The translations under genes were made by a program, and so were the position numbers. The notes under the pieces were generated by a model that was given only the letters and a program-made list of their open reading frames with translations, had not been told where the DNA came from and ran no database searches. A stretch of DNA of 64,000 nucleotides, from contig NW_018405506.1 of the NCBI RefSeq assembly GCF_002113885.1, forward strand, positions 1,398,199 to 1,462,198, given 5' to 3'. The first letter of the stretch is position 1. The number at the start of each line of letters is the position of its first letter. Shown piece by piece: positions 3,933-62,834 of the stretch. Source of the DNA: Mizuhopecten yessoensis (lineage: Eukaryota).

Positions 3933-5453
3933 TGTAGAGGATAGAAGTAAATTCGTTTGTTTTCTGACGTAGAGGATAGGCGTCAATTCGTTTGTTTCTC
4001 TGCTGTAGAGGATAGACGTCAATTTTGCGTCAATACGTTTTTTTCTCTGCTGTAGAGGATAGACGTCAATTTTTCCGTTTCTCTGCTGTAGAGGAAATGC
4101 GTCAATACGGTTTTTTCTCTGCTGTAGAGGATAGACGTCAATACGTTTGTTTCTCTGATGTATAGGCCAGACGTCAAATCGTTTCTTTCTCTGCTGCAGA
4201 GGAAATGCAATTCGTTTGTTCACTGCTGCAGTGGATAGCGTCAATTCGTTTGTTTTTCTGCCGTAGAGGATAGACGTCAATTCGTTTGTTTCTCTGCTGT
4301 AGAGAATTGACGTCAATTTGTTTGTTTCTCTGCAGCAGATTATAGGCGTCAGTTCGTTTGTTTCTCTGTTGTAAAGGATATACGTCAAGTCGTTTGTTTC
4401 TCTGCCGTAGAGGATAGACGTCAATTCGTTTGTTATTCCGCTGTAGAGGATGGACGTCAAATTTTTCGTTCTCTGCTGTAGAGGAAATGCGTCAATACGG
4501 TTTTTTCTCTGCTGTAGAGGATAGATGTCAATACGTTTGTATCTCTGCTGTAGAGGATAGACGTCAATTCGTTTATTTATCTGCTGTAGAGGACTGACGT
4601 CAATTCGTTTATTTATCTGCTGTAGAGGACACACGTCAATTCGTTTGTTTCTCCTGTAGAGGATATGCGTCAATTCGTTCGTTTCTCTGCTGTGGAGGAT
4701 AGAAGTCAATTCGTTCGTATCTCTGTTGTAGAGGATAGACGTCAAGTCGTTTATTTATCTGCTGTAGAGGACTGACGTCAATTCGTTTATTTATCTGCTG
4801 TGGAAGACACGCGTCAACTCGTTTGTTTCTGCTGTAGAGGATAGACGTCAACTCGTTTGTTTCTCTGCTGTAGAGGATAGACGTCAATACGTTTGTTTCT
4901 CTGCTGTAGAGGATAGACGTCAACTCGCTTGTTTCTGCTGTAGAGTATAGACGTCAACTCGTTTGTTTCTCTGCTGTAGAGGATAGACGTCAATTTTTCC
5001 GTTTCTCTGCTGTAGAGGAAATGCGTCAATACGGTTTTTTCTCTGCCGTAGAGGATAGACGTCAATTCGTTTGTTTCTCTGCTGTGGAGGATAGAAGTCA
5101 ATTCGTTCGTATTTCTGTTGTAGAGGATAGACGTCAAGTCGTTTATTTATCTGCTGTAGAGGTCTGACGTCAATTCGTTTATTTATCTGCTGTGGAAGAC
5201 ACGCGTCAACTCGTTTGTTTCTGCTATAGAGGATAGACGTCAACTCGTTTGTTTCTCTGCTATAGAGAATAGAAGTCAATTTGTTTGTTTCTCTGCTGTA
5301 GAGAATAGAAGTCAATTTGTTTGTTTCTCTGCTGTAGAGAATAGAAGTCAATTTGTTTGTTTCTCCGCTGTAAATGATAAACGTTAATTTGTTTGTTTCT
5401 CTGCTGTAGAGTATAGACGTCAATTCGTTTGTTTCTCTGCTGTAGACATGCTG

Positions 5454-6669
5454 TCAAGGAAAGCATCGCGTGTAAGGTACAACACTGGACACTCAATAAG
5501 TAAATGTGAAACAATATCAATGGTAGTTTTCGCACACAATCTACATGTAACCTCTTCAATTTCATTTGTCACTGATAGTGAGGAAATGCGTCAATACGGT
5601 TTTTTCTCTGCCGTAGAGGATAGACGTCAATTCGTTTGTTTCTCTGCTGTAGACATGCTGTCAAGGAAAGCATCGCGTGTAAGGTACAACACTGGACACT
5701 CAATAAGTAAATGTGAAACAATATCAATGGTAGTTTTCGCACACAATCTACATGTAACCTCTTCAATTTCATTTGTCACTGATAGTAACATAAGATCCAC
5801 TAATTTCCAGCTATATTGAGGAAACTTTGCACACAAACTCAGGATTGGATTAGGACCTATTGATACATGTATTCCATTGTAACTTTTTAATTCGACTTTG
5901 GAAGAGAGATCATGTTTCCATTTATCATAATACCAATACGACACAACATTTTTAATAAACCTTTTCCATGAATTTTTTGGATATAACACATAGTCTGTGA
6001 TTTGCTCTATAAAAACATCTCGATTTGAAATTTCGTCATTACTTGATAAATGTTCGGAATAAAACCCAATTTCCGTTTAAGCGTGTTTTCATATATAAAG
6101 CTACATAGTCTTACGATGAATACCAGGTACCACACAAGTGACGTATCACCGTTTGCAAGTTTATTCCAAAAGTTAAGTTTTCTATTTTCAACTTCACTCC
6201 ATAGATCCATCAGACCCATACACTGCGAGGTAACTGCGGTGGACGATCTTTGCGGGAGACCAACGCACCGCCTGCACGCGTACCTCAAAGTTACATTTAC
6301 TTGGTCAATCGCTTTATGAGTATATTGACTCCACAATTCAAATCCATATATGATTCCTGACGTAATCACAGACGTGAGTATAGTCTTACTCGCCATGGGG
6401 TCTAACCCATTATAGTGCATACCAACACCTACAAGTGAATTGAGGGTCCGCCTGCCTTTTTCACAAGAGTCAATTATGCCTTCATCGTCTTTTAGGTTGT
6501 AGGTGAAACTAACCCCCGCGTAGATGGTGCTAGTAACCCATGAGAGTTCTTTCTCACCAAGATGAACAGTGCGATTGAATTTCAATCTCTGGCGCTGTAG
6601 TGTAAACTGCCTGGCGTTACTCTTTTGGGGGTTGTAATTGAGCCGCCACTTGCATGAATATCTGTGCAC
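5454..6669 (-). mobile_element. second, internal fragment of the same LINE (plus a ~125-bp partial duplicate at 5454-5578)
   Basis: 5660-6669 is near-identical to 2225-3160/3163-3758 with a few substitutions and a 1-bp frameshift near 6010. Flanked by satellite on both sides. Confidence 0.85.
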
Positions 6670-7840
6670 AAGAATTGACGTCAGTTTGTTTGTTTCTCTG
6701 CAGCAGATTATAGGCGTCAGTTCGTTTGTTTCTCTGTTATAAAGGATATACGTCAAGTCGTTTGTTTCTCTGCCGTAGAGGATAGACGTCAATTCGTTTG
6801 TTATTCCGCTGTAGAGGATGGACGTCAAATTTTTCGTTCTCTGCTGTAGAGGAAATGCGTCAATACGGTTTTTTCTCTGCTGTAGAGAATAGACGTCAAT
6901 ACGTTTGTTTCTCTGTTGTATAGGCCAGACGTCAATTCGTTTGTTTCTCTGCTGTGGAGGATAGACGTCAATTTGTTTGTTCACTGCTGCAGTGGATAGG
7001 CGTCAATTCTTTTGTTTTTCTGCCGTAGAGGATAGACGTCAATTCGTTTGTTTCTCTGCTGTAGAGGATATGCATCAATTCGTTTGTTTCTCTACTGTAG
7101 AGGTTAGACGTCAATTAATTTGTTTCTCTGCTGTAGAGAATAGACGTCAATTTGTTTGTTTCTCTGCAGCAGAGAATAGGCGTCAGTTCGTTTGTTTCTC
7201 TGTTGTAAAGGATATACGTCAAGTCGTTTGTTTCTCTGCCGTAGAGGATAGGCGTCAATTCGTTTGTTACTCCGCTGTAGAGATAGACGTCAAATTGTTC
7301 GTTCTCTGCTGTAGAGGAAATGCGTCAATACGGTTTTTTCTCTGCTGTAGAGGATAGACGTCAATACGTTTGTTTCTCTGCTGTAGAGGATAGACGTCAA
7401 TTCGTTTGTTTCTCTGCTGTAGAGGAAATGCGTCAATTCGTTTGTTTCTCTGCTGCAGTGGATAGGCGTCAATTCGTTTGTTTCTCTGCTGTAGACATGC
7501 TGTAGACATCAATTCGTGGTTTTTTTTCTCTGCTGTAGATGATAGGCGTCAATTCGTTTGTTTCTCTGCTGTAGAGGACAGACGTCAATTATTCTGTTTA
7601 TCTGCTTTAGAGGATAGCCGTCAAGTCGTTTGTTTCTTTCCTGTAGAGGACAGACGTCAAGTCGTTTGTTTCTTTGCTGTAGAGGACAGACGTCAAGTCG
7701 TTCGTTTCTTTGCTGTAGAGGACAGGACAAATATTTTGACAGTAAATGTTGTGATGCGATAAGCTATACACCCTGCAGTGTTTTCGTTCTTCCTATTGTC
7801 TGTCACTCATGACATTCCTAAATTTTTGTTTTTCTTGTAG

Positions 7841-10299: not shown

Positions 10300-11270
10300 G
10301 TACCCTGCACCCCGTACACGTAACCTTATTCACCATACCCTGTACCCGTTCCTATTTACCCTCTTCCCTAAACACTGACCCATCTATCATGTACCCCGTA
10401 CCTTCTACCTTATATTCCATCTACCCATTCCCTTATACTATGTACCCTGTACTCCCTGAACTCTACCCTTTGGCCTTTAGCCTGTACTTTCACATTTCTA
10501 CCCTGTGTCCCTCTCTCTGCCATGTTCCTTCTTTCCTGGGCCCCTGCGATCTATCATGTACCATCTACCATGTGCCTGTAACCTCTACCCTATACATTCT
10601 ATCATGTGCCCGTACTACTACCCTATACCTTGTTCCTTGTTCCTGTACCCTGTACCTTCTACTCTTTGCCCGTACCCTCTAACCTTTACATTCTACCATG
10701 TGCCCGTACTACTACACTTTACCTTCTTCTTGTTCCTGTACCATCTACCTTGTACCTTCTACTCTTTGCCTGTACCCTCTACGCTGTACCTTCTAACATG
10801 TGCCTGTACCCTCTACCATATATATTCTACCCTGTGCGCGCACCCTCTACCCTGTACCTTCTACCCTTTAATGTCTACCCTGTGCCTATACCCTCTACCA
10901 TGTATCTTCTTCCCTGTGCCTGTACCCATTATACCCTATACATTCTACCCAGTGCCCGTACCCTTTACCCTTTACCCTTTACCTCCTACCCTGTGCCTAT
11001 ACCCTCTACCATGTACCTTCTATCATGTGTCGGTACCCCTTACCTTATTCATTCTACCCAGTGCCTGCACCATCTACCCTATACATTCTACCTTGTACAT
11101 TCTTCCCTGTGTCCGTACCCTCTACCCTATATATGTTACCCTATGTGTCTACTCCCTACTCTTTACCTTCTTTCCTACGTGCCCCTTACCTCTACCCTAT
11201 GTTTTCTACCCTGTGTGCATACCCTCTCCCATGTAGCTTCTATTCAGTGCTCCTGTCCTCTACAATATAT
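10300..11270. repeat. degenerate pyrimidine-rich minisatellite (ctgtaccctctacc-type units)
   Basis: Repeated ccctgtacc/ttctaccc/tgtgcc motifs. These generate spurious Y/P/L/C-rich ORFs in several frames. Confidence 0.85.
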
Positions 11271-11624
11271 CTTTTACTCCATATTTGCATACATGCTTTC
11301 TGAAATTAAGAGTTTTTAAAAATTGTCATTTTTTATCATCTTAATGGTATTCACTTTAAAATGGGGTTTCCGGGAAAGTAGACGCATTAGTTTCTTTCTC
11401 TTTTTTGTTATAATGATAAAGGGAATTATTATCTTATTTGATACAGTAATCAAAAACGTATTGTTCAATTGGGCTAATACGAGCTTTCAGCTCATTTCCC
11501 GGCCATCCGGTCAAGGTAATCAAGGTAATCAAGTAGTGCGTTGGACAGAATCTATCACAATGTCATTTCAGGACATGTCTAGTTGCATTTAGATTGTAAT
11601 GTCGTATTTGTTTTGTTTTTGAAG

Positions 11625-16164: not shown

Positions 16165-17502
16165 ATGGACGGCACAATTGAAGGTCCTTTGTCAGAATCT
16201 CAGAGACAAACAATCTCTCAACAAAATGAAAAAAAAGAAGAAGAACCGAAATCAAGGCAAAAGTCCAGACGGAAGTGGTGGAAAATGTCACGTAACGAAA
16301 AGGAAGAAAAAACACAAAAGTACGAGAAAAACATGGGCTGCTGTGAGGTTTTGCTCAGTAGCGAGCTAATTTCCAGTACAAATACAGATTTAGATGGCAA
16401 CGTAGTCAACGGCATCAGAACGGTAAAGGGCACAAGCGAATCTGTGGATTTCCCTTTTAAATTTTCTGTCAACAAGAAGCCTTCTCTCGATCCACTCGAT
16501 GTGAATAATGTAAAGAAACATGAAAAGAAAAAGAAGCGTAAAGATAAAAAGACCGCGGCTAATGAATCCTCGGACATTTACAAGAAATCAGGCAAGTCTA
16601 AAAGTGCTTCTACTCATAGTCCTCGGTCGCAGAATCCACTCCAAAGAAGTGAAGGACTCAGGGAGACTTCAGTGAGTCCCACTGATTCCGAATTCTGGGG
16701 CTTCAGTAACTCGCGTTCTCCGCTGAACTTCAATGTAGAACACGCGCTTGACATGAATACCATTGTCGATCGCCCTGTTGACAATGCCGCGACAACCTCA
16801 GATGACGAATACGAGGCCGAAATGGCATATCGATTCCCATTCCTGTACAAAAGACTGTCCATACAGCAACCACAAAACACAGGTCACCGCGACCTTCGTC
16901 ATCCAGAAAGACATGTCACGACGCCGAAGCCGCCACGACAAACCCTCGAGAACTTGACTGCGGATGATATAAAGAAACCTTTCAAAATGAAGTCGCCAGA
17001 TTTGGTTTGCAATAGGAGGAACGTTTATATAATTGATAAAGACACGAATAGAAGCACGCCTGTTTTTACCTGTAGACAAGGCAATGTGAAGGAGAGTGAT
17101 CTGCATGCCGTAGCCAAAAACAAAAATATCGCCACCATCAGTTATAGCACCGTGGACAAAGACAAAAACATGGCTACCATCAGTCGCGGCATCATACACG
17201 TCGACAAAGATAAAACCACTGCCTCCGTCAGTCACGTCATCGTGGACAAAGATAAAACCACGGCCACCGTCAGCCATAGCAATGCGACGGGAAGTAAGGT
17301 GAATATTCCGGATACAGACAAAAACATGGCTACCATCAATCATAGCAATGTACAAGAGGTAGACAAGCATATGGAGAATCAAGATACAAATAAATATACA
17401 GCTACAAGCGATGAGAGCAGAAAAGGTCGTAGAGTGCAGATTATTGATAATCTGTCGTCCGATATAGACAAACTGCTGGATGAATTAGACGAGATTTGGT
17501 GA
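16165..17502 (+). CDS. uncharacterised 445-aa low-complexity, probably disordered protein (single exon)
   Basis: Long ORF with raised GC. Lys/Ser-rich, with internal ATxSxxxVDKDK repeats. TGACGTCA at 16022 upstream and AATAAA at ~17675 downstream. No recognisable globular domain. Confidence 0.7.
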   Translation: MDGTIEGPLSESQRQTISQQNEKKEEEPKSRQKSRRKWWKMSRNEKEEKTQKYEKNMGCCEVLLSSELISSTNTDLDGNVVNGIRTVKGTSESVDFPFKFSVNKKPSLDPLDVNNVKKHEKKKKRKDKKTAANESSDIYKKSGKSKSASTHSPRSQNPLQRSEGLRETSVSPTDSEFWGFSNSRSPLNFNVEHALDMNTIVDRPVDNAATTSDDEYEAEMAYRFPFLYKRLSIQQPQNTGHRDLRHPERHVTTPKPPRQTLENLTADDIKKPFKMKSPDLVCNRRNVYIIDKDTNRSTPVFTCRQGNVKESDLHAVAKNKNIATISYSTVDKDKNMATISRGIIHVDKDKTTASVSHVIVDKDKTTATVSHSNATGSKVNIPDTDKNMATINHSNVQEVDKHMENQDTNKYTATSDESRKGRRVQIIDNLSSDIDKLLDELDEIW

Positions 17503-23420: not shown

Positions 23421-25732
23421 TTATGCATGACCGTTACAGGTCTTATCACAAATGCCTTTATTTTTCGCGCGAGCTGAGCTGTCTGCCAGGAGCTCTAGGA
23501 TTTCTTTTCTCTGCTTCATCTGTGCTACATTGGCTGGAGTTTTCTTATTGAGTCCCTCGGCGTGTACATCTGCTCCGTTTTGTAGCAGAAGTTTTACGAG
23601 CGCAACATGACCTGAATCGCATGCGCAATGGAGTGGAGTGTAGCCAACCTTTGACCTGATGTTGACGTCTGCGCCACCTTGTATGAGAACCTTTGCCACC
23701 AAGTTATATCCGTCATAACATACCCTGTGGAGACATGATAAGCCGAAATAGTCCGTCTGGTCGTAGTCCGCGCCATTTTGTAACAGCATGCTTGCAACAT
23801 TATGGCGGCCTTTTTGTGTGGCACAATACAATGGGCTCCAACCCTTTGTGGTCGCTATATTGATATCGGCACCGCTCTCTATCAGGGAAAGAACAATGTC
23901 CAAATCCCCTTTACCGGAAGCCAAATGTAAGGGAGACCATCCTGTGTGTGCAGTGACATTGATTGAGTTTTGTCGTTTCAAGAGCATTTGGACAACCTTG
24001 GCGTTTTCTTCTCCGCCACCGAAGTAAATGGCAGGCCATCCACCACAAGTGACCACGTTCGATTTCGCGCCGTTTTCCAACAACACACGGAGCAACTGTA
24101 AATCCCCGTTCCAACACGCATAATGCAGAGGTGTTCCAAAGGACTCTTGTTCCTGGTTAACGTCGGCTCCGTAGTCAAGAAGTAATTTCACGGTGCCATA
24201 ATTGCCTGCTTTACAAGCGATGATTAGTGGCGTCCTGCCGCCTGCATCGACGCAGTGTGCACTTACACCTTTACTAAGCACAAACATAACTGCCTCGGCG
24301 TTTGCACTGAAGCATGCACCGTGCAAACAATCTGATGTCGGCTCCTCATTATGCAAAAACTGTCGCAGCAGGGACAGGTTTCCAGTTCGGCCAACCCAGT
24401 AAAACAACGAGTATCCCTTCTTATCCACGCTTCGGTAAAACCTCAGCTGTTTTGTGCGCTCCATATTTGAAATGTACATACACCACCGGATAGAGAAGGA
24501 CAGATCATCGATAGAGGGGTTTTGGAAAACATCGTCAATGTCTCCGTTCATGACATCATCCGTAAAACGCTTGGCCAGTTCCTTGTAGTAGATCTCTGGC
24601 AACCGTACCAACGTGTCTTCCGCGACGTCAGGGAAAGACTGAAGCCGCACGTGTTGCTGGATAAAGTGAGCGCTGCAGTGCTGCAATACAAACATGGCAT
24701 CCTCGTTTGCCAGCACAACGCCTACCGCTTCCAGAAGAGAGGCATGCACGAATTTGTATGCAGTATCATTAACTGTCACATGTGAATCGCGCAGCCTTTC
24801 AATGGCACGATGAATATCAAACAATGTGAGGTTGGGCAGTTTACGTGCCTTTTTTATTGATTCTAGTTTCTCTGCAACCCAGTTGACATTCGGTGAGGCC
24901 CCACAACAAATATAGCGCAGCCTTTCGAGCCATCCATTGGGGGGTTTATTTTGCGTGGGTTCGCTTGGCGTCAGATTATCAAACAGTAAGTGTCCATCAC
25001 AAACAAGCAGTAGGATCAATGCTGAAAACGCAACACTGTCTCTCCTTGAAAGCTGAACAAGTTCTTCACGTAACTGTGAAACGGGATGAAGAAAAAAACT
25101 TTCACCTTTTGCTCGAAACATTTCGTCAGACGCAAAAAGTCTACAGGATAATGGGAAGCATGGGGTATCGCATGATGTTAGCATTTCGATCGTCTTTGCA
25201 TTCAGGACAATGTCTTTGTCCCTGAGATGACTCCTAATCATCTGTAGCTTTTCAGATGATGAGAGACGCAAATCAGAAGAAGAAATATCAATCGGCTTCC
25301 CAAAAAGATGAAAGCGATTGACTGTTGCTTTCAGATCTCTGTAGATGTACCTGCGGACTGTTGCTATGACAGTTGTATATTTGTGGTTGATACATCCCCG
25401 TAAGTCCTCCTGCAGACGCTGCCAAGCTTCGGCACGTTCAGGAATGGCACACGACTCACCAACGCAATTGTCTACGAATATCGTTTGCTTTTTGCTAGCA
25501 TCCCATTTTTTACGCCATTCATCCGCCGAGTCGATTATGACAAGGTTGTCGCCGGCTACGAGACGACGCAGAATGAGGTGCCATGCACAGGACGTCTTTC
25601 CCTCGCCCGAGTTACCAACAATCAGAACGGCCCCATCACGGTCTACCTCTTCCTGTATCCGACGATAGGCACGAGTCTCCACGAACTTCTTGTCTTCCGC
25701 GCCTCTCTTTTCTATGAGCACCTGCATCAGCG
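23421..25732 (-). CDS. HEPN-nSTAND3-ankyrin protein, last coding exon: nSTAND3-type P-loop NTPase, helical/winged-helix region and ~10 ankyrin repeats
   Basis: Acceptor ttcgttacag| at 25733 (phase 1). FVETRA motif, Walker A LIVGNSGEGKTS (25593-25616), Walker B TIFVDNCVG, CFPLSCRLF, YKFVHASLLEAV. Ankyrin consensus GRTPLIIAC, GTPLHYAC, GWSPLHLAS, GYTPLHCAC. Confidence 0.92.
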
Positions 25733-26215
25733 CTGTAACGAAACGGTTTATCTTAAAAAAATCAATTATTTGGTTCTCACATTTACCTCCACTGAAGTTG
25801 TGATTGCAGAATCTAACCCTTCATAATACTGACTCATTGTCACATCCAATGTCAAAAAGAAAATCACAATCTGCGGCATTTGCAGTAAGTTTTAGTATAT
25901 ATCACAAAACTGTATTATTTTTGGTTTCTTTTCTTATTCTTACTATGTATGATATATTTCTATACCAGAAACAAACTAAAGAAATATCATTTAAAAAACA
26001 AAATTGTGATCGGAGGTTACGTTGAAAAGACACTTGATCAACAGTTAAGTGGATAAATCGTTGACGTCTCTTCATATGTCTTTACTTATCCATGATAGCT
26101 ATACATATTCTATTTAAAACCCAAAAAAAGGCAAAAACTCTCTACAGATCATTTTCAACAGTCCGGTTTCTCCACGTTTAAAAATGTATAGCTATATATA
26201 TAAATATAAACTTAC

Positions 26216-26254
26216 TTGTGTTAATTGGCAGGCTTATCACAGCAGGTAAGGTGT
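26216..26254 (-). CDS. HEPN-nSTAND3-ankyrin protein, 39-bp linker micro-exon
   Basis: ttacattacag|acacc...acacaa|gtaagt. Phase 1 at both ends; encodes (H)TLPAVISLPINT(T) and joins the flanking exons in frame. Confidence 0.75.
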
Positions 26255-26664
26255 CTGTAATGTAATAAGGAACACATAGTGAAATACAACATAAAATAGG
26301 ATTTGTTATCTAGTGTAAACATCCTTTTAAATATATCAAATACAACATTCCCTCGTAAACAAGGAAGTCAACGTTTCTAAATAATGTTCTTTGGTTGCTA
26401 GGAACGAAAGAGAGAGGAAACATAAAACTCCTGATCATTGTGTAATGATTGGATTAGGATCTTGTTTTGTTTCTCGTTATATAGCATTAATGACACTGAA
26501 AAGATATTTTACTTGAGTTTTTGTTTAGTCTTTCGTAATGGCGTAATGAAATATGATACATGAAAACACACTCATAAATACTAATCCATATGACCAAAAC
26601 TGTAAATATAAACAAGATGATTTCCTAAAATCTTTCAGTACCCGTTTGGTAGTATATAACTTAC

Positions 26665-27211
26665 GATTTAAAATGTTGTCCACTTCCTGCTTGTATTTAT
26701 CTCCCCCTATACTTATAACAGCTGTGTAAAGCTCCGCCCACGTTTCCTCGAATTCTTCATCGCTGATTGCGGCTTTCAGTTTATGACCGTACAGGTCGTT
26801 GCGAGCGAGACGTAACCGCTCGATATTGGCTGCGTCGCTAGAGTCTGAGGAATCTGGTTTGATACCCCAACCCAGCTGGGGTGGTCTGATTAAAGGTCTA
26901 CTGCTACCATCATCATCAGTAAATCGGGTCTCCCTAAACAGAACGTAAATCAAGGAAATGTCGAATACGTTTGAGCATGGCTTAGCATCTGTCGGGAAGA
27001 GTTTGGCTCTACCATGTCCTCCAATACTTGGCTTCTTCTTCAGTATTGATTTATTACTCGATACGAAGTCTGACAGTTGACTAGGGGGAACCAATATGTC
27101 AAATTTATTCTGAAGGACCTTTGTACCAATGTCTAGAAGTAACTTGCAAAGCCGGATGAAGTTATTTGATTCTCTTGTGGCACTTCCTGCGGAAACGGGA
27201 GCCACTGCCAT
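26665..27211 (-). CDS. HEPN-nSTAND3-ankyrin protein, first coding exon: DZIP3-type HEPN domain
   Basis: ATG at 27211 after acceptor tttctcattgcag| (27240). Motifs NFIRLCKLLLDIG, FDISLIYVLFR, PPQLGWG, ANIERLRLARNDLYGH, ISDEEFEETW are typical of the DZIP3/hRUL138-like HEPN family. Phase-1 donor aatc|gtaagt at 26664. Confidence 0.87.
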
Positions 27212-30200
27212 GCCTAGAACACAGATGGATTCCTGTATTCTGCAATGAGAAAGTACAAGTAATAAGGTAATGTAGCATACCATGATGTCTATACTCAGGA
27301 ATAACATTATTTTCATACCCAAGCAGAAAATAATAATTGCTTTAATAATATGATAAAGTATAATATCTAAAACAAGGTTTTCTTATCCGTATGGAATAAA
27401 ATTACATACTAATATTACTTCAAAATGTATGTTTGCCTTTAGCTTTTCAAGTACCGTTTAATAACAATCTTTAATGATGATAAGAAGTTATCTTTCGAAT
27501 TGTAAACCAGTTACATTTTTTTCACCCGTTTGTAAGTAAATTCTTGTGTAGAACAATGGAATGTTTAAGAAATCTCTTGTATATTAGACAGTTGGGAATG
27601 TTTCCGGTAAATACGATAGAAAAGACTGCAAAAGGAAAGAATCGCATGTAACGACGATTATATCACTTCTATTATAGTAGGCGTCTAATTTAATGAAATG
27701 TTTTTTGCGATAAATTTTGAAATCTTATTATATATTTTTTTAATATGTCTCGAGGATAAAACATAACTTAAACATAAATGTATAATACTGCATTAACATC
27801 AAAATCTTTGCTATACACAATTATCAAATAAAAGGTAAATGAAAATCCTGGCTTATCGACCCCCGTAGGAAGGGTATACATGAACATTTATTAAACAGGT
27901 GAATACTGCATTAACAGCTAATAAACCGTCAGTTGTCATAAGTTTGACAAAATAACAGCTAGTACATGAACCAAGTAAGTATCCTCTCTACAGCTAACGA
28001 AGCACTAGAAGACACAAAAGTCATTAATTTGATATGTAATGTTTTGCATGTAAAGTTTCTCTTTAACAGTTTGTAAATTAGTAAATAGTACCTCTACAAA
28101 GTATTTGGTCTGCAGTATGTTTCAATCTTAGTACAAGCTTAATATTTAATGTTCCATCATTGCAGGGACAATAGGAACCCGGTGACACTACACCACTCTT
28201 GTCCTACCGAGTTAAATGTGTAAATGTGAAGGAAAACAATGTCTAAATTTCATATTTGTCTATTTATTGTATAAATATTATATAGTTCTGTTTCAGAAAC
28301 GTTAATTTTCATTAGTATAGAGTCTGTGTATAGGGTATTCTATGTGGTAATTCAGTATTTAAGTTTGCAATGTTGTATCAAGCGCATCTTCCAGCTATGT
28401 GTTATCCCAGTGTTTTCTTGCCATGTTTTGCATCATTGGAGTTTTGATGTCTTGATATTTCGCGACAACTGTTTTAAGTGGTTTACATCTATAAATGTAT
28501 CTGTGTCAGTAAATCTTTAATGAAAAAATATGTTTCCGTCCGTCCACTGTTAATAAAACAATTTTGGTTTGCTGGTGTTGTTTAACGATAATGGGTGTTG
28601 ATAATGTTTCTGATGGGATTGTGGTTAGAGCACACTCTATTGAGGTCAATGAATGATTAAATATATTTTGTTGTTAAGGCCCTTGCTAATTTTTTACCAA
28701 AAAGACATCCAGTCCAAATTTCAAAACAACAGTTTCATTAAACCATTAAAAAGACAATATTTTCCAGAAGAAAAAAGTTAAAAAAAAAATCATTTAAACA
28801 ACTTTTGGCTTTACAACGTTGTAAACTATCCATAGCTGCCATTATCTCCTTAGTAACCAGAGACTAGGAGAGGATATATTTTGAGGATTAACTTGAGTTC
28901 GCTCCCTTTATTAAAATAAGTTACGTAGCTTAGTCGTTGGGTTTAAATGTAGGTGTGAGTCAATCCTATTACAAAACGCTAGCAAACAACCATGAATAAG
29001 TGTTGACAATATTAATTCGTAATATTTTGTTTTATGTATTTCAGAAAGTAAGTAAATCAATGTGAAGATTAAAACTCATACCTAAGCGATGTGTTCATAT
29101 TCTCTATAAGTTATAAGTAAACATTTCATGTGTTCCTTATACACTGAAAACGATATTCGTTGATAAGTCTGAATTACAAACCCAATAAATAATAACTATT
29201 AACGAGTGAAGTCTGTAGCTGATATAACGACACTTGAAATAGAACCACACTGTAAACACCAGGCTGCTGGAAAGGTTAATACGATGGGTCTGTTTATTTG
29301 TTATGGTAGCTCACCGGTATACCATTTATTCGAATCGAGAAAAAACGACCGCCTAACCAGTCAGTGTTTAGGGATGATTTCGGCTTCGTGTGTGCTAAAA
29401 GTCATTTTTCAAATTTGCATATAAGGACGATTTAGTTATTTACATTTATCTTTAGATTCACACATTCTTAACAAACAAAAACCTTATAGGATTTATAATA
29501 TCTATAAATAAATTCATTTCAGCGTTATCTGAAACACGTTAGACAGAAGTGTCACTTTATAACGTTATACTAATTTTGAGCATATCTCACTTTAAAGATA
29601 TGTTTTTCCGATAACGATGTCCACAAAACAACCTGAACCACGTGACACGACAGATAATATCGTTGCATGATATGAAGCAACACATACTGTTTGTAAAATG
29701 AATCACCAGTCATGTCCAAAGGTTAAACAGTACCCAGACTTCCAGACGGACGAGGAAGAAACCCCTTGTATCTGCTTATTACGCATCGTACACGAAATCC
29801 GTTTGTGTTCGGCTTGTATGGGAAGAGTCCAACCCTTACCGTTAAAACATATAATGACTTTGTAAACAATCCAAAAATGCGAACGAAATGTACGGGGGCT
29901 GGGGGCTGGGGGCTGGTTCAACTTCAATTCATGTTGAATCCAACAGAACGATTCAATGTTCGCAAATAAGAATTAAGTTATGATTTTGAGTATTCATATA
30001 AGTACATTATCAATGCACTTTACTAGTTAAGATCATTAAAAGTACAACTACATCTACATGCCTACAGGTATTAAGGATTTTGTTAAACTCCTAAAATGAC
30101 CATGTCACCAAGGACTCGTCTTAATAAGTACTTATCCCGTAAGGGTAATGAAGTAAACCCTAAATGTTTAATTATACACCACATATATCCATTTTGTGCT

Positions 30201-33200
30201 TAATTTTTGAATGCCCTTTTAATGTAGTTTCCAACGATTTCCTATGTGCCTATATATGTTATGTATATGTGTTTAATAAAGAATCCTTATGTAGTATTTA
30301 AATACCGGGCTGATGTATCTTTAGAGAACATATTTTGGCAGCTGGCAAACGTTTATTATATGACGAAGATGTGAAAAAGCTCTTTATACTTGAAAAGGTT
30401 GATTTTTGAAGTTAGTTTTTAATCTAAGTTGAATATTCATGTATAAAGATGTACGAAGGCAATATTTACACATATCTACAGACACGAGGATAATCCTGTT
30501 TGTGTTACAACCTGCAGCAATATCATATACTCTTCGGAACTACCCATCAGAAGATGGAAACTTTAGGAATCCATAAAGGCAAAATAGCTAAGCCCACCTG
30601 AAACCATCAGATTTTTATTACTAGAAATGCACTATTGTTGTGAGAAAATGACATTACGTGTGGTGCACAATTACATACCAACTGGTCTTTTTTTCCAGAG
30701 AAAAAGGGACCACTTTAAAAGAGCGTGATATCAATGTAATTTGATAATTTAATGAGTACTAATATTGAAAGCACTTATATTTTGATTCTGGCGTTTCGTT
30801 CCTTATTCGTAAGGATTTTAGATAGCAATTCAATTAATTATACAGCATGGCAGATTGTTGACTGCTTACATCGATGGAAAAATGTACAACACTAGCAAGA
30901 GATACAGGTGGATGAAGTCAATGGTCTAATGGTCACTATCATAATCTCATTGGAAAACATTCTATTTGTATTTATGCTTAGTGATTTGCCCTTCAGTGTC
31001 GTATCTATATTGATACGTGTTTGTTTTTTTAGTCAAATCAGGGTTACATCTTCAGGATTTATTGACTTGATCTTTACCCTTAAATCCCGCTATCTTTTAT
31101 TTTTTCAATAAAATATCGGTGATGAAACCAGTCAAAAATGAGTCATCTAGACATAATATTATTGGAGAGAAAAAACTGAAAATAAAAAACAAAATTACGG
31201 AGAACGAAGACCTGCTGTCTTACATTTTATTTGTCAAGTGATTTTGGGAAACTTGCAGTAGTTCTTAGAGGAATGCTGATAGTAAATCCTGACAGAGGCA
31301 AGATTATCGTCAGTTTCTTATTTCTTCGCCAGTGTTATCAGTGATACTGATTGGCGACTGCTAACAAGTTTTAAAATAATTATATACAATGAAACAAAAC
31401 ATTGGGTATAAATAACTGGTGTTTGATTATCAGTGAACATTGATATATGACCTTAAAATCAGTTACATTTTAAGCTTGTGGAATGAAATCATTACAGTTT
31501 GATAATAAAGAGGGTTGGCATTGAACATTGAATTTAGGAAGACCTCGGTTATACAGCTAAACGCTTTTATAAATTAGATAAAATACAGAATTTATTGAAA
31601 ATTATATGGACGCTGAAGTTAAAAGCTATCACTTTATTTCAGAGTTTGATAGTGCCCTTAACTGGGTATAACAATTGAATGGTTCTTGATCTGTAACCTA
31701 ATGTCGATGATAACATTTTGAGCGAGAAAGAGAAGTTTAAAGTGTAAAGAATGTTCCTGACCTTGAACGATAAGGCCTGGAAGATGACATTGATCCAACC
31801 CAAACTTCCGGTGGTATTGTGCTTAAACACTCTGATATAATTTATGATCTCGTATTTCAATATGTTCTGCTATCAAACATGCAGATTGACATCAAGATTG
31901 TTAATATAGAGAGGCCACACTATCACAGTTCTCCCAGCATTCCTGACAAACATTCGTCTTCTGCGTCACAGATAACTCATGAAATTTCATTTTCATTTTT
32001 ATAAAGGGCATAACATTTTAATGTTGTTGTATGATGTGAATTCAATTCAAATTATATCTTGAAGTGATACTTTGCCAACAATATTCTTCATTTAAATAAT
32101 GATCCTAACAAAATATTACACTTTTACATCATACATAATAAAATCGGAAAGAAAACGGCCACTGGTTGTACATAGGCATGAATTTTATCTAATATTTGAC
32201 TACATGTTAAGCAAATTGTTTCGGCTATTAAAAAACAAAATAACTCCTTAATACACGTGATTCACTGCATTTGGTTCATTAGGAATAAAACGGAGATTTT
32301 CGCAAAATTATTGTACTTAATCTCTTACTTAAGAATCTTTGTCCACATATATCTTTGACGGACGGAAGCAATCAAATGAAATTTTGGATGACTATCGTAT
32401 ATAATGAGAACTAATGCTGAACAGTTTTCTTTCTAGTTCTGACTATCTTCGTGATTCTTCTAGACTTATACATTGTAATCGTATCACTCACGAGAGTGTG
32501 AAACCTATTTTTAGCTGAAAACTACTTAATTAAGAAGGAAATATTTTCAACACTGCATCAAATATATAGAGGTTTGGGTTAATCATTTGATGTTAAGAAT
32601 ATATATGTCAAGAATGGAGGCGTTTTTTGCAAAGTTATGTATCTTAAAATTAAATATTAAAAAGTAATCAAAACATGCAGGTGTTAGTAATATTGTATTC
32701 ATTTTTGAGGGGTCAATGCCCCATATGGCGCCCTCCAGGATTATCCTGTGTATTACATGTTTTGCATAAAACAAAAAAATAACAATAAATCGATATAAAG
32801 AATATCATTGAATTGAAATAAACGCCAAGCTGAATTGCTTTTATTAGACGTTGACGCGGGATAAGTTGAGTTCCATGTTTGTATTTAATACCGTGTATGA
32901 CCAACGTTTTATTCGAGAAAAGCGATGCAGCATCGTTGCATTGAACATGTAAACAGACTACAAAAACAAATACAAAAAAATACAAAACAAAAATACAAAA
33001 TAAAAATACAAAACAAAAATACAAAAATCGCATTTTACGAGTTTTCAGTTGTTACGGAGACTGAAAAATGCAATTAACGTTTGTTTACTCGTCATGAGAG
33101 TATAAAATACAAGTTATTCGCAAAATAAAATACAATTATGAGGACTTTCACACTTAAATGATTCAAGTAAATAGTGTGATACTTGCTAGGTATTTAACTC

Positions 33201-34045
33201 CCAAATATTTATACAACAAAAACGTTGTTCTGTTTTCACAAATTTAGGGTTGATCCGCAGAAAAAGGTGTCAATGAATCTTTCCCTTTTTACTTTGTTCG
33301 TATCATAACCATTGTCACTTTTATGACATATTCTATTTTAGTTTTTTATACAAGAAGTATTCTTTATTGATATCACATATTGTGATACATTTTACAGAGT
33401 TATCATCATTCGAAATGTGAATAATTGAAGAAAATCATCTGTTGAGAAAAAAGACCTTTAAGTGAAACTTTACTCAAACAATCCTTTATCGCTTAAATGC
33501 CATAATTCAAAAACAAGTGATGCTGATGACTTTACAATTATTAAAACGAAGATAGATTGAAACCTCTCATCAATCATAAATTGTAAAATTCATACCTATA
33601 AAAACATCAAATATATAAAATAAAATCAGCAAATAAACTCTAAGTAGATAAAAAAAAACCACCAAGTACAGGGTCTAAAACGGCAGAAAGGAGAAAACAA
33701 ATACATCCTGGTCTCTAGAAAAACGAATGTAAACCCAGGTAAAGATATTTTACATAGACCTTTCTATTACAAATTGCCTATCTCTGACTGCTTCGACATA
33801 AAAAGGTCCCATGTTTTCAGCTCTGTGTTGCAGTGGCAGTCTATTTGTTTTCTAAAGTGTATAGACAAACTTATCTGATAATTTGTAGCGTTGAAACATT
33901 ACAAATACATGAACTTATGAAAGGAGGTTAAAACAACTTATCAAGAGCCGGAAAAACAACAGCAAATTTGTTTTTGTTTACACTGTTTTGGGATCAAGAT
34001 ATTGAAGGTGGAAAAGAACACAAACACTGTATAAAAACCGTATAG

Positions 34046-34399
34046 CATTCTTGATACTCCATGGTTAAAGCTAACTTTCGCTTTCTGCACCCCTTAAATA
34101 TTCCATGACAAATTGAAAGCACGTGGCTAATAATTTGATTGGTTTAAGGTAAAGAAAACCTGACCACCCGCTCGGCTGATACCTGTCCTTTGGAGATTAC
34201 AGAAGAGCGACACCCGACTGCAAAGCCATTCAATGTTACCGTTATGCGACCGACGGATTCTTTGGATGTACATCAAAGGATCAAACTAGTCTACTTATAC
34301 CATCCACAGGGTGTTGCACACTGAGACTTAGATTTTGCTATGACATTTTCCAGGGGTGGCGAGAGCAAAAGAGAGCGAAACCCCTGGGTATCGAGATTG
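34046..34399. mobile_element. MITE family A (CATCCTCGATA...), old diverged copy
   Basis: TIRs and internal sequence (gatgtacatcaaaggatcaaactagtct) match the copies at 42.7 kb and 55.2 kb. Degenerate TSD accgta(tag/cgc). Confidence 0.7.
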
Positions 34400-35750
34400 A
34401 CCGTACGCTAAAAAAGGGTGGGTAATGTCCATTCCTTACTTGTTTAAAGTCGTTCGGTAGAAATGTCAATAGCTTTAAGATTGTAAGAAAGTTTGTAGTG
34501 ATGATTATATTAGTTATTGCTGACTGATCAATCAATAAATTCATGATACATGTTTTTAAGGTGAATAACAAACGTGTTTCATAAATGTATTGATTACCTT
34601 CGAATAATGGACCTGTTACATATAACATGAGCAGCAACAACTCTAATATCAGTTATCAATAATAACACATGTATTGTGGTAATACGTAACAACACTTCTA
34701 GCAACCATTATTAATAACACCACCTAACATAACAAATTAATAACAACTATATATAATTTATAATAACATCCCCTATATACATGTATACTTATTAACTCAC
34801 TTAAAACACCTATATATATCTTGCTGATAATATAGATATCATAAGTAATAACGACAGTATGATCCAATATTGGCACTTGATCCGAACAAAAAAAGTTGAA
34901 TGGATGCGTATTACTTAAATAGATGTTTGGGCAAGGAAGTAATAACCACAGTGCGGAAAAAGATATTTGTCATATTTTCAGGCCGATCTGCCCATTTATC
35001 AAGACAGAAATAACATATCAATACATGACTCGTTGATAACACCTGTACATATGTTTACAGATTCGTTACTAATGACTTACAACGCATTGTCATTCATTAT
35101 GCAGGTGTTTTTATTTGTTTCTCTTAAACCTTATATGTTATGTCGATTTCCTTTATCGAAATAACACGGATGAATTAATCATACGAGCGGTTCCTTTCAT
35201 AATCATAAGATTTAAAATGACATCTCTTTGTTGAACCAGATTTAAAGCCGATAACATATGACTGTTTGAAATGTGTGTATTCTGAATAACAAAAAAAATG
35301 TAAATAGCACAGCAGAGCACACCTAATGGTACTAGACACCGCCAACCAAGGTCGACATAAATAATGCTATGATAGATACCTGCTCGGTTACACTACATCT
35401 GGTAAAGAAGCATATAAAGTATTATCTTCTCTGATACTGAACATATATCATTGGCAAAATAAAAATAATTAAATATATGCAATGAATATTAAACCTTACA
35501 TATCACCACATCCGCATTGAACTTTAATAATCAGGTGTTTTCTTTGAAACTCGTATTGAATTAACTGATATAAGCCCATATTAGCTAACGAATGAAAATA
35601 TGTAAAATGTTCAATACATATTAAAATCTGCTTGAATGTGAAAAACACAAATTACGAATTTATAACATAATAATCTGTATGTTCAGAGCATAAACTTACC
35701 ATAATATCGGCATGTGTATGCCAAACAAATTATACAATAACAAAACATTA

Positions 35751-36095
35751 CCTGTCTACACCAGCCTGGGCTCCCGAGAGAGCCGGGAAGATAGATTCGT
35801 CGGTATTTGTACCGTCAACCGAGGTCATCAGTGAGGGAAATCCTATCAGGGGCGGAAGTTGATCCGGGCTTAAGTCTACAAACCTGTGCATCGAAATATC
35901 TCGTTTGTGTCATGACCCGATGCTACCCGGTTTGGTTGTGATATGAAACAATTGTAAACAGTTTTATGTGCAATTATGTTAAACTACAGTGTGTTTTAAT
36001 AGAAGGATTTTGATGATGGATTACTCGTTTGAAATACCAGGAACCGGTTAGGATATTCATTAACCGAAAAGTCGGTCATTTGTAATTTCCCCAAC
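35751..36095 (-). promoter_or_regulatory. candidate promoter and non-coding first exon of the HEPN-nSTAND3-ankyrin gene
   Basis: Local GC/CpG-rich patch with a minus-strand donor cag|gtaatg at ~35750. Contains GGGAAATCC (35835), GCGGAAGT ETS box (~35852), AACCGAAA (36062) and GGGGAAATT (-, 36084-36092). Inference only. Confidence 0.3.
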
Positions 36096-36229: not shown

Positions 36230-37070
36230 TGATGTTTAGATTGACACTTCTTCAGCTTAGATTAGCGCTACATCAGCTTAGATTAGCGCTACATCAGCTT
36301 AGATTAGCGCTGAATCAGCTTAGATTAGCGCTACATCAGCTTAGATTAGCGCTACATCAGCTTAGATTTTTACTTTTTCAACTTAGACTAACACCTCTTC
36401 AGCTTAGATGTTTAGATTGACACTTCCTCAGCTTAAATGTTTAGATTTACTCTTTTCAGCTTAGGTTAGCACTTCTTCAGCCTAGATAATCACTTCTTCA
36501 GCTTAAATTAACACTTCTTCAGCTTAAATTAGCACTTCTTCAGCTGATGTTTAGATTGACACTTCCTCAGCTTAAATGTTCAAATTTACTCTTTTCAGCT
36601 TAGATTAGCATTTCTTCAGCTTAGATTATGACTTTTTCAGCTTAGGTTAGCACTTCTTCAGCCTAGATTATCACTTCTTCAGCTTAGATTAGCATTTCTT
36701 CAGCTTAGATTAGTACTTCGTCAGCTTAGATAAGCACTTCGCCAGCTTAGATTAACACTTTTTCGTTTTAGATTAGCACTTCTTCAGCCTAGATTAGCAC
36801 TACTTCAGCTTAGATTAGCACTTCCTCAGCTTAGATTAACACTTCTTCAGCTTAGATTAGCACTTCCTCAGCTTAGATTAACACTTCTTCAGCTTAGATT
36901 AACACTTCTTCAGCTTAGATTAGCACCTCTTCAGCATAGATTAGCACTTCGTCAGTTTAGATAAGCACTTCGCCAGCTTAGATGAACACATACATTTACG
37001 TTTTAGATTAACACTTCTTCAGTTTAGATTTACCCTTTTTTAGCTTAGATTAGCACATCTTCATCTAATG
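36230..37070. repeat. 21-bp minisatellite (cttagattagcacttcttcag)
   Basis: ~35-40 tandem units. Confidence 0.92.
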
Positions 37071-37692: not shown

Positions 37693-39404
37693 AACAGGGG
37701 CCCAAAGGGCCTGTATCGCTCACCTGAATATGGTAGGTGCTGTAAGTACATATGAAATTTTAGAAAGATACATCCAGTACTTGAGATATAGCGAGAACAA
37801 ACTTCAAACAGAGCCCCACCCCTATGCCCCTAGGGAGGTCATACCAACCAATTATACAAAATTGCGTCCCCTTGGCCCAAGGATGCTCCAGACTAAATAA
37901 GGATAAAATCCCTTAATCCCAATGGTGGAAGAAAGATTTTAAAGGTTTTACCTCTATTTCTATTGGGCCCCGCCCTTCTGCCCCCTGGGAGACCACACCC
38001 ACTGCTTATACAAAATTGAGTTCCCTTGGCCCAAGGATGCTCCAGAATAAATTAGGAGAAAATCCCTTAATCCCTATGGTAGAAGGATTCTAAAGGTTTT
38101 ACCTCTATTACCCATATTGGGCCCAGCCCCTCAGGTCCCAGGGGGGCACACCCACCGTTTATACAAAATTGGTTCCCCTTTACTCAAGGATGTTCTACAC
38201 CAAATATGTACCAAATCCTTTCATTCCTACAGAAGGAGAAGGATTTTAAAGAATAATTTGCTATATTTTCCCTATTGGGTCCCGCCCCGCAGTCCCAAGG
38301 GAGACTAGAGGCATCGTTTATACAAAATTGGTTCCTCTTTACCCAAGGATGCTCCACACCAAATATGTACCAAATCCTTTCATTCCTACAGAAGGAGAAG
38401 GATTTTAAAGAATAATTTGCTTTGTTTCCCCTATTGGGCTCCGCCCCTCAGGCTCCTGGGGGGTCAGACCTACGGTATATACAAAATTGGATCCCCTTCA
38501 CCGAAGGATGCTTCAGATCAAATATGGATCAAATCCTTTCATACCTACAGACGAAGAAGGATTTTAAAGAATAATTTGCTATGTTTCCCCTATTGGGACC
38601 CGCCCCGCAGTCCCAAGGGAGACTAGAGGCATCGTTTATACAAAATTGGTTCCTCTTTACCCAGGGATGCTCCACATCAAATATGGAACAAATCCTTTCA
38701 TTCCTACAGAAAAAGAAGGATTTAAAAGAATAATTTGCTATGTTTCCCCTATTGGGCCCCGCCCCTTAGGCCCCTGGAGGGCCAGACCATCGGTTTATAC
38801 AAAAGTGGATCCCCTTCACCCAAGGATGCTTCACACCAAATATGGACCAAATCCTTTCATTCCTACAGACGAAGAAGGATTTTAAAGAATAATTTGCTAT
38901 GTTTCCCCTATTGGGCCCCGCCTCTCAGGCCCCTGGGAGCCAGACCCACGGTTTATACAAATTCGTTCCCCTTCACCTAAGGATGCTTCAGACCAAATAT
39001 GGAACAAATCCTTTTATTCCTACAGAAGAAGAAAATAAAGAATTTGCTATATTTCCCCTATTGGGTCCGGCCCCTCTGCCCCTAGAGGGACCATATCCAT
39101 CATTTATACAAATGTTGTTCCCCTTCTCCCAAGGATGCTTCTGACCAAATACGGAACAAATCCTTTCATTCCTACAGTAGAAGAAGGATTTTAAAGAAGA
39201 ATTTGCTATATTTCCCCTATTGGGCCCCGCCCCTCAGGCCCCTGGGTGCTGGACCCATCGTTTATACAAAATTGGTTCTTCTTCACCCATGGATGTTCCA
39301 TACTAAATTTGGTTAAAATCCGTTCAACGGTTCATGACTAGTAGTGTAAAGTTGACGGACGACGGACGGACGACAGACGACGGATGACGGACCAGGTGAG
39401 CTAA
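37693..39404 (+). mobile_element. Helentron-associated non-autonomous element (HINE, pearl/CvA/DINE-1-like) with internal ~158-bp tandem array
   Basis: 5' aacaggggcccaaagggcc hairpin. Subterminal IR gctcacctg (37718) / caggtgagc (39393). ~9 central units of ~158 bp and a (GACG/GGAC)n microsatellite before the 3' end. Confidence 0.85.
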
Positions 39405-40679: not shown

Positions 40680-41355
40680 GGTTATCTCTGTATTGTCATC
40701 GTTATTGGACAGAGGACTACTATATTGGTCTTTCGCCTCAGGCCAATATAGCAAGCCTCGTGCCAATCTAAAGCTTCGCCTCGGACCAGTATAGCAGGCC
40801 TCGTGCCAATCAAAAGCTTCGCCTCGGACCAGTATAGCAGGCCAGGTTCCAATCTAAAGTTTCGCCTCGGACCAGTATAGCAGGCCTCGTGCCAATCTAA
40901 AGCTTCGCCTCGGACCAGTATAGCAGGCCTCGTGCCAATCTAAAGCTTCGCCTCGGACCAGTATAGCAGGCCTCGTGCCAATCGAAAGCTTCGCCTCGGA
41001 TCAGTATAGCAGGCCTCGTGCCAATCTAAAGCTTCGCCTCGGACCAGCATAGCAGGCCTCGTGCCAATCTAAAGCTTCGGGGGGGACCAGTATAGCAGGC
41101 CTCGTGCCAATCGAAAGCTTCGCCTCGGACCAGTATAGCAGGCCTCGTGCAAATCTAAAGCTTCGCCTCGGACCAGTATATCAGGCCTCGTGCCAATCGA
41201 AAGCTTCGCCTCGGACCAGTATAGCAGGCCTCGGGCCAATCTAAAGCTTCGCCTCGGATCAGTAAAGCAGGCCTCGTGCCAATCTAAAGCTTCGCCTCGG
41301 ATCAGTATAGCAGGCCTCGGTCCAATAGCTATAGGCCAATACAGAAATAGCCCAT
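40680..41355. repeat. 43-bp minisatellite (ctcggaccagtatagcaggcctcgtgccaatctaaagcttcgc), ~14 copies, bracketed by short inverted repeats
   Basis: Highly homogeneous units 40736-41325. ggttatctctgtattg (40680) versus caatacagaaatagcc (41337) suggests an array carried inside a small element. Confidence 0.9.
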
Positions 41356-62430: not shown

Positions 62431-62834
62431 TTGAGTTTATTCAGTTGTCAAAAATTGTCATACGAACACATTTAAGGTACCTCTTCAAAAATGAAAATGA
62501 AATTATTTATTGATGAATGTATGATCAATAAAAGTATTTAAAAGTATTGTTTAGCATTGAATACATGCACAATTCAGTGGAACGTTTTGTATGCCTTTTG
62601 AACAGCATTGCCACTCATGTTACTGTGTTTCACGGTGTACAAATACAACAGCCTTGTTTCAGGCTCTGTTAAATTTTGTACATGATTAATGATATTTCAT
62701 TATTTATGTACATATTAGTCTGTGGCATGATATGGTGATCATCTTGGATCCTTGCAGTACCATCCAATTTCATAAAGAAGGAAATAATTTGGTAAGGAAA
62801 TGACACTTGATAAAGTCATTAATGTTAGAATAAA

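Follow-up and report, generated by a model that had tools for sequence, protein, structure and literature searches.

LOC110448843 of the scallop Mizuhopecten yessoensis encodes a single HEPN-nSTAND3-ankyrin protein, a probable ligand-gated ribonuclease

In marine invertebrates, proteins are known in which a HEPN domain of the DZIP3/hRUL138 type is combined with a NACHT/STAND module and repeats (Anantharaman et al. 2013, PMC3710099, Table 1; Takeuchi et al. 2022, PMC9646362; Noel et al. 2023, PMC10236652). In oysters, pearl oysters, corals and Aplysia such combinations have been read as NLR-like ribonuclease (RNase) receptors (PMC3710099, PMC9646362, PMC10236652, PMC9334734); in corals and Aplysia the HEPN_DZIP3 N-terminus is found on NLR-type proteins (PMC10236652, PMC9334734). 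For Pinctada fucata more than 50 HEPN_DZIP3-NACHT-repeat proteins were reported, the Rx4-6H motif was present in 194 of 202 cases, and degradation of viral or transposon RNA was proposed (Takeuchi et al. 2022, PMC9646362). STAND nucleoside triphosphatases (NTPases), HEPN RNases and ankyrin repeats also occur among the variable C-terminal domains of the expanded TRADD-N proteins of bivalves (Kaur et al. 2021). Here we describe LOC110448843 of Mizuhopecten yessoensis, which lies on the minus strand of a 64,000-nucleotide stretch of contig NW_018405506.1 (positions 1,398,199 to 1,462,198), called the window below. Its 965-residue product joins a DZIP3-type HEPN domain, an nSTAND3 NTPase and ankyrin repeats, and is probably a cytosolic STAND-class switch protein that works as a ligand-gated HEPN RNase.

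With the HEPN-STAND proteins of other marine invertebrates the scallop protein shares the DZIP3 HEPN N-terminus, the STAND NTPase, the C-terminal repeats, the Rx4-6H motif with an Asn after the Arg, and the expansion in bivalves. Unlike these proteins, its NTPase is of the nSTAND3 and not the NACHT type and its presumed sensor consists of ankyrin repeats instead of LRR, TPR or WD40 repeats. The gene also differs in being a single copy that is conserved in scallops and mussels, not part of a variable tandem array. The HEPN-STAND-repeat layout itself is already published, and what differs here is the nSTAND3 NTPase with an ankyrin sensor and an unusually conserved single-copy gene. As both the gene and the general idea can be found in databases and papers, the value of the present analysis lies in confirmation and in the selection of a candidate.

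A second relative is found in bacteria. Avs5 (SIR2-STAND; PaAvs5 and EfAvs5; bioRxiv 10.1101/2025.07.08.663546; PDB 9jap) defends against jumbo phages and has an NTPase annotated as PF20720. It has the same order of effector, NTPase and helical-repeat sensor and the same nSTAND3 Pfam label as the scallop protein. However, Avs5 is a prokaryotic protein with a Sir2 NADase and not a HEPN domain as effector, and its sensor is made of TPR, Sel1 or PPR instead of ankyrin repeats; the scallop gene, unlike prokaryotic Avs, has spliceosomal introns and mollusc orthologues. In PADLOC no Avs model matched the scallop protein; only PDC-S73 (E 9e-8), mad8 and DrmD matched weakly, on the P-loop. In a six-frame search all 14 bacterial and archaeal genomes used as controls gave a PF20720 match, which exceeded the cut-off in seven. 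Hence the nSTAND3 label alone is weak evidence of close kinship to Avs5. In the Pfam search no NACHT, NB-ARC or LRR family was found at E<=0.1, so the protein is not a strict NLR and is NLR-like in logic only. An earlier note on this DNA, made from the sequence alone, had called the protein Avs/NLR-like; this label holds for the logic of effector, switch and sensor and for the STAND fold, but neither for a strict NLR nor, in PADLOC, for an Avs model.

RNase L and Ire1 are KEN-type HEPN RNases that need paired HEPN domains, with RNA cleavage and translational arrest as the output. RNase L, like the scallop protein, carries ankyrin repeats and a HEPN-superfamily RNase in one polypeptide. Its order (ankyrin repeats, pseudokinase, KEN) is however the reverse of the order found here, it has a pseudokinase in place of a STAND NTPase, and its RNase is KEN and not DZIP3. 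No kinase or KEN (Ribonuc_2-5A) family was found in the Pfam search, and the scallop protein thus does not belong to the RNase L/Ire1 class. Human SAMD9 is described as a STAND-like protein with a virus-activated tRNA-Phe nuclease (PMC10246899). SAMD9 and SAMD9L resemble the scallop protein as animal STAND-like P-loop proteins with a built-in RNA nuclease effector, and differ from it in an AlbA_2-type instead of a HEPN effector, in the flanking domains and in having no ankyrin repeats. SAMD9 is the nearest experimentally supported animal precedent for the STAND-nuclease concept.

According to the window sequence and to RNA contigs, LOC110448843 has four exons, three of which are coding. Its features are as follows (window coordinates):

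35752-35793, minus strand: 3' end of the non-coding 5' exon (contigs of runs X1 and X11)
27240-35751, minus strand: first intron, about 8.5 kb, inside the 5' untranslated region (UTR); GT at 35751-35750, ..ttgcag ending at 27240
26665-27239, minus strand: start-codon exon (ATG at 27211), residues 1-182 plus one base, HEPN_DZIP3 (sequence, Pfam, RNA contigs)
26783-26803, minus strand: HEPN catalytic-type motif R137-N138-D-L-Y-G-H143 (Rx5H), read from the sequence
26216-26254, minus strand: 39-nucleotide micro-exon, the linker between HEPN and NTPase (HTLPAVISLPINT); joints on both sides in RNA contigs
23421-25732, minus strand: last coding exon, residues 196-965 and stop codon (list of open reading frames, sequence, RNA contigs)
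24339-25730, minus strand: NOD module, residues 197-660, with P-loop nucleotide-binding domain (NBD), helical lid, winged helix and a further helical domain; nSTAND3 match at 25221-25685
25593-25616, minus strand: Walker A, G235-N-S-G-E-G-K-T242; GxGK at least 90% conserved in 81 relatives
25467-25472, minus strand: Walker B pair D283-N284, from the alignment
24744-24746, minus strand: His525 of the winged-helix domain (YKFVH-A), invariant in 81 relatives
23469-24338, minus strand: about 9-10 ankyrin repeats, residues 661-950, with a degenerate first repeat near residue 635 (Pfam and count by eye)

On the minus strand the start-codon exon ends at 26665 and is followed by a GTAAGT donor. The micro-exon (26254-26216) has ttacag before and GTAAGT after it, and the last exon starts at 25732 after another ttacag and reaches its stop at 23421. 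The coding parts of 547, 39 and 2312 nucleotides add up to 2898, thus both introns are in phase 1 and the product has 965 residues. In the list of open reading frames (ORFs) the HEPN exon and the NTPase-ankyrin exon appear as two separate ORFs, 26525-27322 and 23421-25727. The earlier note had remarked on this split into seemingly unrelated ORFs and had joined them through three exons with GT-AG sites, two phase-1 introns and 2898 coding nucleotides into one fusion of HEPN, P-loop NTPase and about ten ankyrin repeats. This gene model was found again in the sequence and in the database protein P0001 (NCBI LOC110448843 'uncharacterized protein'; UniRef 'Ankyrin-3'), which has 965 residues and reads ...DNILN-HTLPAVISLPINT-TLMQV... 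at the junctions, exactly as predicted from the exons; one spliced mRNA and the Pfam matches given below complete the picture of one 965-residue protein. Searches were done exon by exon, and for full-length comparisons P0001, which is identical to the gene model, was used.

Both coding joints, 25732 to 26216 and 26254 to 26665, are crossed by assembled contigs of X1 and X11, which come from two studies and of which X11 is a declared RNA-Seq library. The intron ends in these contigs are CT..AC on the plus strand, i.e. GT..AG on the minus strand. Upstream of 27242 the contigs of both runs hold 36-42 extra letters whose only match in the window is 35755-35784. There a non-coding exon ends with ...gtagacag and is followed by gtaatg at 35751. 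Together the extra letters and the splice sites indicate a further non-coding 5' exon, a first intron of 8.5 kb and an ATG exon that begins at 27239; the joint 27239/35752 is implied by loose contig ends. A tandem array (36236-37063; periods 21/42 bp), a 21-bp array, lies just upstream of the non-coding 5' exon. At the other end of the gene the contigs run unbroken from the last exon (25334) down to 22800, so that the 3' UTR comprises at least 620 nucleotides. One X11 contig (depth 9) lacks two bases at 23447, eight codons before the stop; this allele alters only the non-conserved C-terminal tail past the ankyrin repeats.

The HEPN domain was identified in Pfam on the start-codon exon (HEPN_DZIP3, PF18738; 86.5 bits, cut-off 27, E 1.9e-24, covering positions 1-132 of the 144-position profile). 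The catalytic-type motif, which the earlier note had described as an intact R-x4-6-H (RNDLYGH), is indeed read at 26803-26783, and R137-N138-x4-H143 is invariant in the four scallop orthologues. Of the 71 aligned HEPN domains of the family, all have D84 and N138, and at least 90% retain R93, R132, R137 and H143. The spacing between Arg and His varies: it is Rx5H in 38 and Rx4H in 29 domains, and the R..H motif is missing in four. N138 is the polar residue after the Arg that is looked for in HEPN Rx4-6H motifs. The AlphaFold model of residues 1-196 (pLDDT 93.5) is an all-alpha bundle with the fold of solved HEPN RNases; it matches Csm6 and AbiF and, further down, 2hsb, 1wwp and LsoA. A PDB sequence search with the HEPN exon and the NOD part gave no usable match.

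When modelled as a homodimer, the HEPN domain (residues 1-196) scored 0.57, compared to 0.01 for the highest-scoring of three controls. Among proteins solved as pairs of one chain, 21 of 30 pass the mark for this score; among those solved as single chains, none of 23 does. The runs agreed in at least 68% of the contacts and the pLDDT of the partner was at least 83. The symmetric interface comprises R137, residues 140-148 with H143, D84 and the helix 15-30. In the model, this interface has the geometry expected of a composite HEPN site, which supports, but does not prove, the mechanism discussed below; the juxtaposition of HEPN domains which the earlier note had looked to a multimer model for is thus predicted, with R137 and H143 in the interface.

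The last exon carries the nSTAND3 match (PF20720; 112 bits against a cut-off of 27.2, E 2.6e-32), and the ankyrin families Ank_2 (E 2.4e-56) and Ank (E 3.1e-49) were found on the same exon. Thus all three profiles that the earlier note had named, HEPN_DZIP3, nSTAND3 and Ank, are matched in Pfam. In an alignment of 81 NOD modules the Walker A GxGK, D283, R322, F388-P389 and H525 are conserved. H525 is part of a Y-x-F-x-H-D/E motif, and the residues following it are distributed as HD in 49, HE in 18 and HA in three relatives. Its position recalls that of the MHD histidine which contacts ADP in plant NLRs and Apaf-1. All four scallop orthologues carry D-N as the Walker B pair; among the 81 relatives 65 have D-D and nine D-N, and the Mytilus orthologue has D-D. 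The scallop D-N may have arisen as a change specific to this lineage and, by analogy with Walker B mutants of other STAND proteins, may slow NTP hydrolysis. As D-N instead of D-D suggests slow hydrolysis, the main role of the NTPase may be that of a binding switch.

In the model of residues 197-665 (pLDDT 92.2) the NBD is followed by a lid and by a winged helix with the conserved His. The structure matches of this model are listed below with two figures per protein:

NRC2: 12.7, 274
MalT: 12.4, 310
STAND-TPR protein 6mfv: 11.4, 306
NLRC4: 11.2, 311
Apaf-1: 10.6, 324
EfAvs5: 10.5, 184
SAMD9: 9.8, 252

STAND proteins align to the model over 270-350 residues, whereas AAA+ unfoldases align only to the NBD of about 195 residues. 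Since the alignment to STAND proteins extends well past the NBD, the module, as modelled, is a genuine STAND module of NBD, helical domain and winged-helix domain (NBD-HD1-WHD). The order of HEPN, NOD and ankyrin repeats corresponds to the layout of STAND proteins with an N-terminal effector and C-terminal repeats. In NCBIfam only sub-threshold, repeat-driven matches to Legionella ankyrin effectors were obtained, which we do not consider meaningful.

LOC110448843 belongs to a large family. Public proteins that match residues 1-660 form 1789 clusters (50% identity) at E<=1e-3 and 681 at E<=1e-10, and the order HEPN, NTPase, (middle part), ankyrin was found in about 52 of the 154 proteins mapped. 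The named members belong to Mytilus, Crassostrea/Magallana, Saccostrea, Sinanodonta and Haliotis and are labelled 'uncharacterized', 'ANK' or 'DZIP3-like HEPN domain-containing'; many of the family's database entries are partial, with HEPN alone or NTPase-ANK alone. A profile search of the scallop genome revealed at least 47 HEPN_DZIP3 exons, and a search of the same genome with the NOD module of LOC110448843 yielded 64 places. When the two lists were compared, about 20 HEPN_DZIP3 exons turned out to be followed, 2-20 kb downstream on the same strand, by a NOD-homologue exon, indicating some twenty scallop genes with a HEPN-NOD layout. Any figure for the genomic copies of nSTAND3 is unreliable, as only 21 of 166 candidates were scored and the profile matches every control genome. 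The nearest paralogue of the NOD module is only 27% identical, thus LOC110448843 is a single-copy gene. On contig C1496 (568602-650169) at least four HEPN_DZIP3 exons follow each other on one strand as a tandem series over about 80 kb, and no nSTAND3-like NOD exon was found beside them; possibly this cluster has a different architecture, HEPN-NACHT or HEPN-only.

Likely orthologues exist in four scallop genera and in Mytilus. Those from Ylistrum, Argopecten and Pecten are 83-84% identical to the Mizuhopecten protein, and the Mytilus protein P0008 (973 residues, identical domain order) is 43% identical. P0008 is thus closer than any scallop paralogue, and the lineage is likely older than the split between scallops and mussels. 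Identity to P0002 and P0003 is 80-85% in the HEPN domain, 88-92% in the NBD, 86-88% in the middle part and 80-81% in the ankyrin repeats. The structure of three coding exons including the micro-exon is conserved in genomic DNA of Argopecten irradians and Ylistrum balloti, and the orthologue of A.irradians is an uninterrupted ORF of 951 codons on one Logan contig of 3242 nucleotides (L002). In the Pecten maximus protein P0004 (872 residues) about 2.5 ankyrin repeats are missing at columns 650-770 of the alignment, where a short unrelated stretch is found; this is probably an error of the gene model or the assembly.

How could such a protein work? In the resting state the NOD module would hold ADP, and His525 of the winged helix together with the repeat array would keep the protein closed and monomeric. 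Binding of a ligand to the ankyrin repeats would open the NOD module, and nucleotide exchange and oligomerization would follow. In the oligomer the N-terminal HEPN domains would be paired, so that two R137-N138-x4-H143 motifs could form a composite, metal-independent RNase site. This site would then cleave cellular or foreign RNA, by which translation or virus replication would be shut down. The features of sequence and fold that these steps require are all present and conserved. The earlier note had put forward the same idea of a STAND-gated HEPN RNase; it is plausible, and the folds, the motifs and the HEPN interface fit it, but it is not new, having been in print in 2013, 2022 and 2023.

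Within the large HEPN-STAND-repeat family of molluscs, LOC110448843 is strongly conserved and present in a single copy, so its ligand is probably conserved as well. Probable candidates are a small signaling molecule, a guarded host protein or an invariant feature of microbes or viruses; a fast-changing pathogen protein is less likely. Going one step further, one may tentatively see in the protein the mollusc functional counterpart of RNase L or SAMD9, i.e. a receptor for an invariant signal (a nucleotide second messenger, a conserved viral or host-guard feature) in which STAND-driven assembly switches on a HEPN RNase and arrests translation; this we regard as a possibility and not as the expected outcome.

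Several observations weigh against a ligand-gated RNase, and some of them against an immune receptor in particular. A literature search found no enzymatic, binding or infection study of any DZIP3-type HEPN-STAND protein and nothing on LOC110448843; the earlier note, too, had known of no functional characterization. The predictor used for the HEPN dimer may let the domain pass on its likeness to solved HEPN dimers, and the D-N pair in Walker B could equally stand for a weakened or lost NTPase cycle. In comparison with the A.irradians mRNA contig, the ratio of nonsynonymous to synonymous substitutions (dN/dS) is 0.03-0.07 in every domain, with 0.066 in the ankyrin repeats and a per-repeat maximum of 0.115; dS is saturated (1.5-2.5, about 2), so that these ratios are rough and are taken to mean only 'far below 1'. 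Selection thus strongly constrains all three parts of the protein, including the presumed sensor, which shows no diversification. As to expression, the two deep RNA runs searched as raw reads (X19 and X24) contained two reads each in about 1.9 Gb, which is too few for strand, level or transcript ends and leaves the assembled contigs as the junction evidence; in these two runs the steady-state level of LOC110448843 is very low. A single copy, purifying selection on the repeats and near-silence do not look like the receptors known from arms races, although they do not exclude one.

These data bear most directly on the first alternative, in which the protein is a regulated HEPN RNase as well, but its job is not the sensing of pathogens: it would be a conserved switch in stress or RNA metabolism with a logic like that of Ire1 or RNase L, answering to an endogenous signal. 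The single copy with its distant nearest paralogue, the likely orthologues from scallops to mussels, the conserved intron-exon structure and the low dN/dS throughout, ankyrin repeats included, all speak for such a switch. The same is true for the expression pattern, in which transcripts occur in 14 runs from six studies, with the very low level of the two raw-read runs. The 14 runs, two of them declared and twelve guessed to be RNA, hold 46-69% of the sampled words of the locus, and this share is what is expected of a spliced mRNA because exons make up about 73% of the searched stretch. However, the wider family shows the lineage-specific expansion and the shuffling of architectures that are typical of immune and conflict systems (PMC9646362; PMC8195603), and conserved receptors for conserved microbial molecules exist, so constraint does not exclude immunity. 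Taken as a whole, we consider the endogenous switch rather unlikely. If the mechanism of a ligand-gated RNase is granted, an immune trigger is more likely than an endogenous one, if not by much.

The second alternative concerns the HEPN domain itself, which could be a module for RNA binding or protein docking and not a nuclease. LOC110448843 would then encode a STAND scaffold or adaptor that recruits effectors or senses RNA, with the ankyrin repeats as an output or docking surface. Such a role has precedents in HEPN domains that were described as RNA binders and not as enzymes (Swt1, SACSIN), the 2013 survey calls the Rx4-6H of DZIP3/hRUL138 only 'mostly conserved', and four of the 71 aligned family members lack the R..H motif. 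Yet R137, N138 and H143 do not vary among the orthologues and, like D84 and R132, persist in at least 90% of the family, as expected for catalysis, and the modelled dimer sets R137, N138 and H143 face to face. We therefore regard a purely binding HEPN domain as improbable and the ligand-gated RNase as the better reading. Finally, an annotation artefact in which a small HEPN gene was wrongly merged with an adjacent NTPase-ankyrin gene is excluded for practical purposes because single RNA contigs in two studies join both junctions; the six-frame ORF list does split the gene, and many family entries hold only HEPN or only NTPase-ANK, but the A.irradians orthologue is uninterrupted on L002, the frame of the last exon is matched in phase and lacks an ATG context of its own upstream, and the micro-exon is kept in three genera.

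Among the putative immune receptors of bivalves and corals, HEPN-STAND-repeat proteins rank with the most expanded. If the ligand-gated RNase proves true, NLR-like sensing and RNA cleavage would be directly coupled in single receptor proteins of animals, in the manner of bacterial Avs and CRISPR-associated HEPN systems, and the link between prokaryotic and animal immunity would be extended. Should the protein be a counterpart of RNase L or SAMD9, it would be the first STAND protein of an animal with a demonstrated, working HEPN nuclease, and an experimentally tractable way into a family that counts hundreds of members among bivalves and corals. LOC110448843 is a good first test case, being a single-copy gene with a confirmed transcript, with likely orthologues in scallops and mussels and with confident models of three domains. 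Scallops and mussels are farmed and suffer mortalities from viruses and Vibrio, so a functional antiviral RNase would also be of practical interest.

In the neighbourhood of LOC110448843, the long ORFs 2035-6984, 10505-11319 and 16165-17502 were considered as parts of a system and rejected; none has a Pfam match and most lie in satellite arrays. The last of them, on the plus strand, is a 445-residue ORF with an ATG, rich in Lys and Ser and without a Pfam match, that contains repeated 'VDKDK(T/N)xATxSH' units. The ORFs in the near-identical segments 2035-3919 and about 6007-6700 are without a Pfam match too, and the long 'ORFs' there are mostly translated satellite. These segments split three arrays of a 36-bp satellite (5-1895, 3925-5446 and 6677-7722), each of about 29-53 copies. 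Besides the array upstream of the 5' exon (36236-37063, 21/42 bp), further tandem arrays are found at 37852-39295, 40732-41326, 57835-59777 and 61900-62431, with periods of 159, 43, 47 and 44 bp, respectively.

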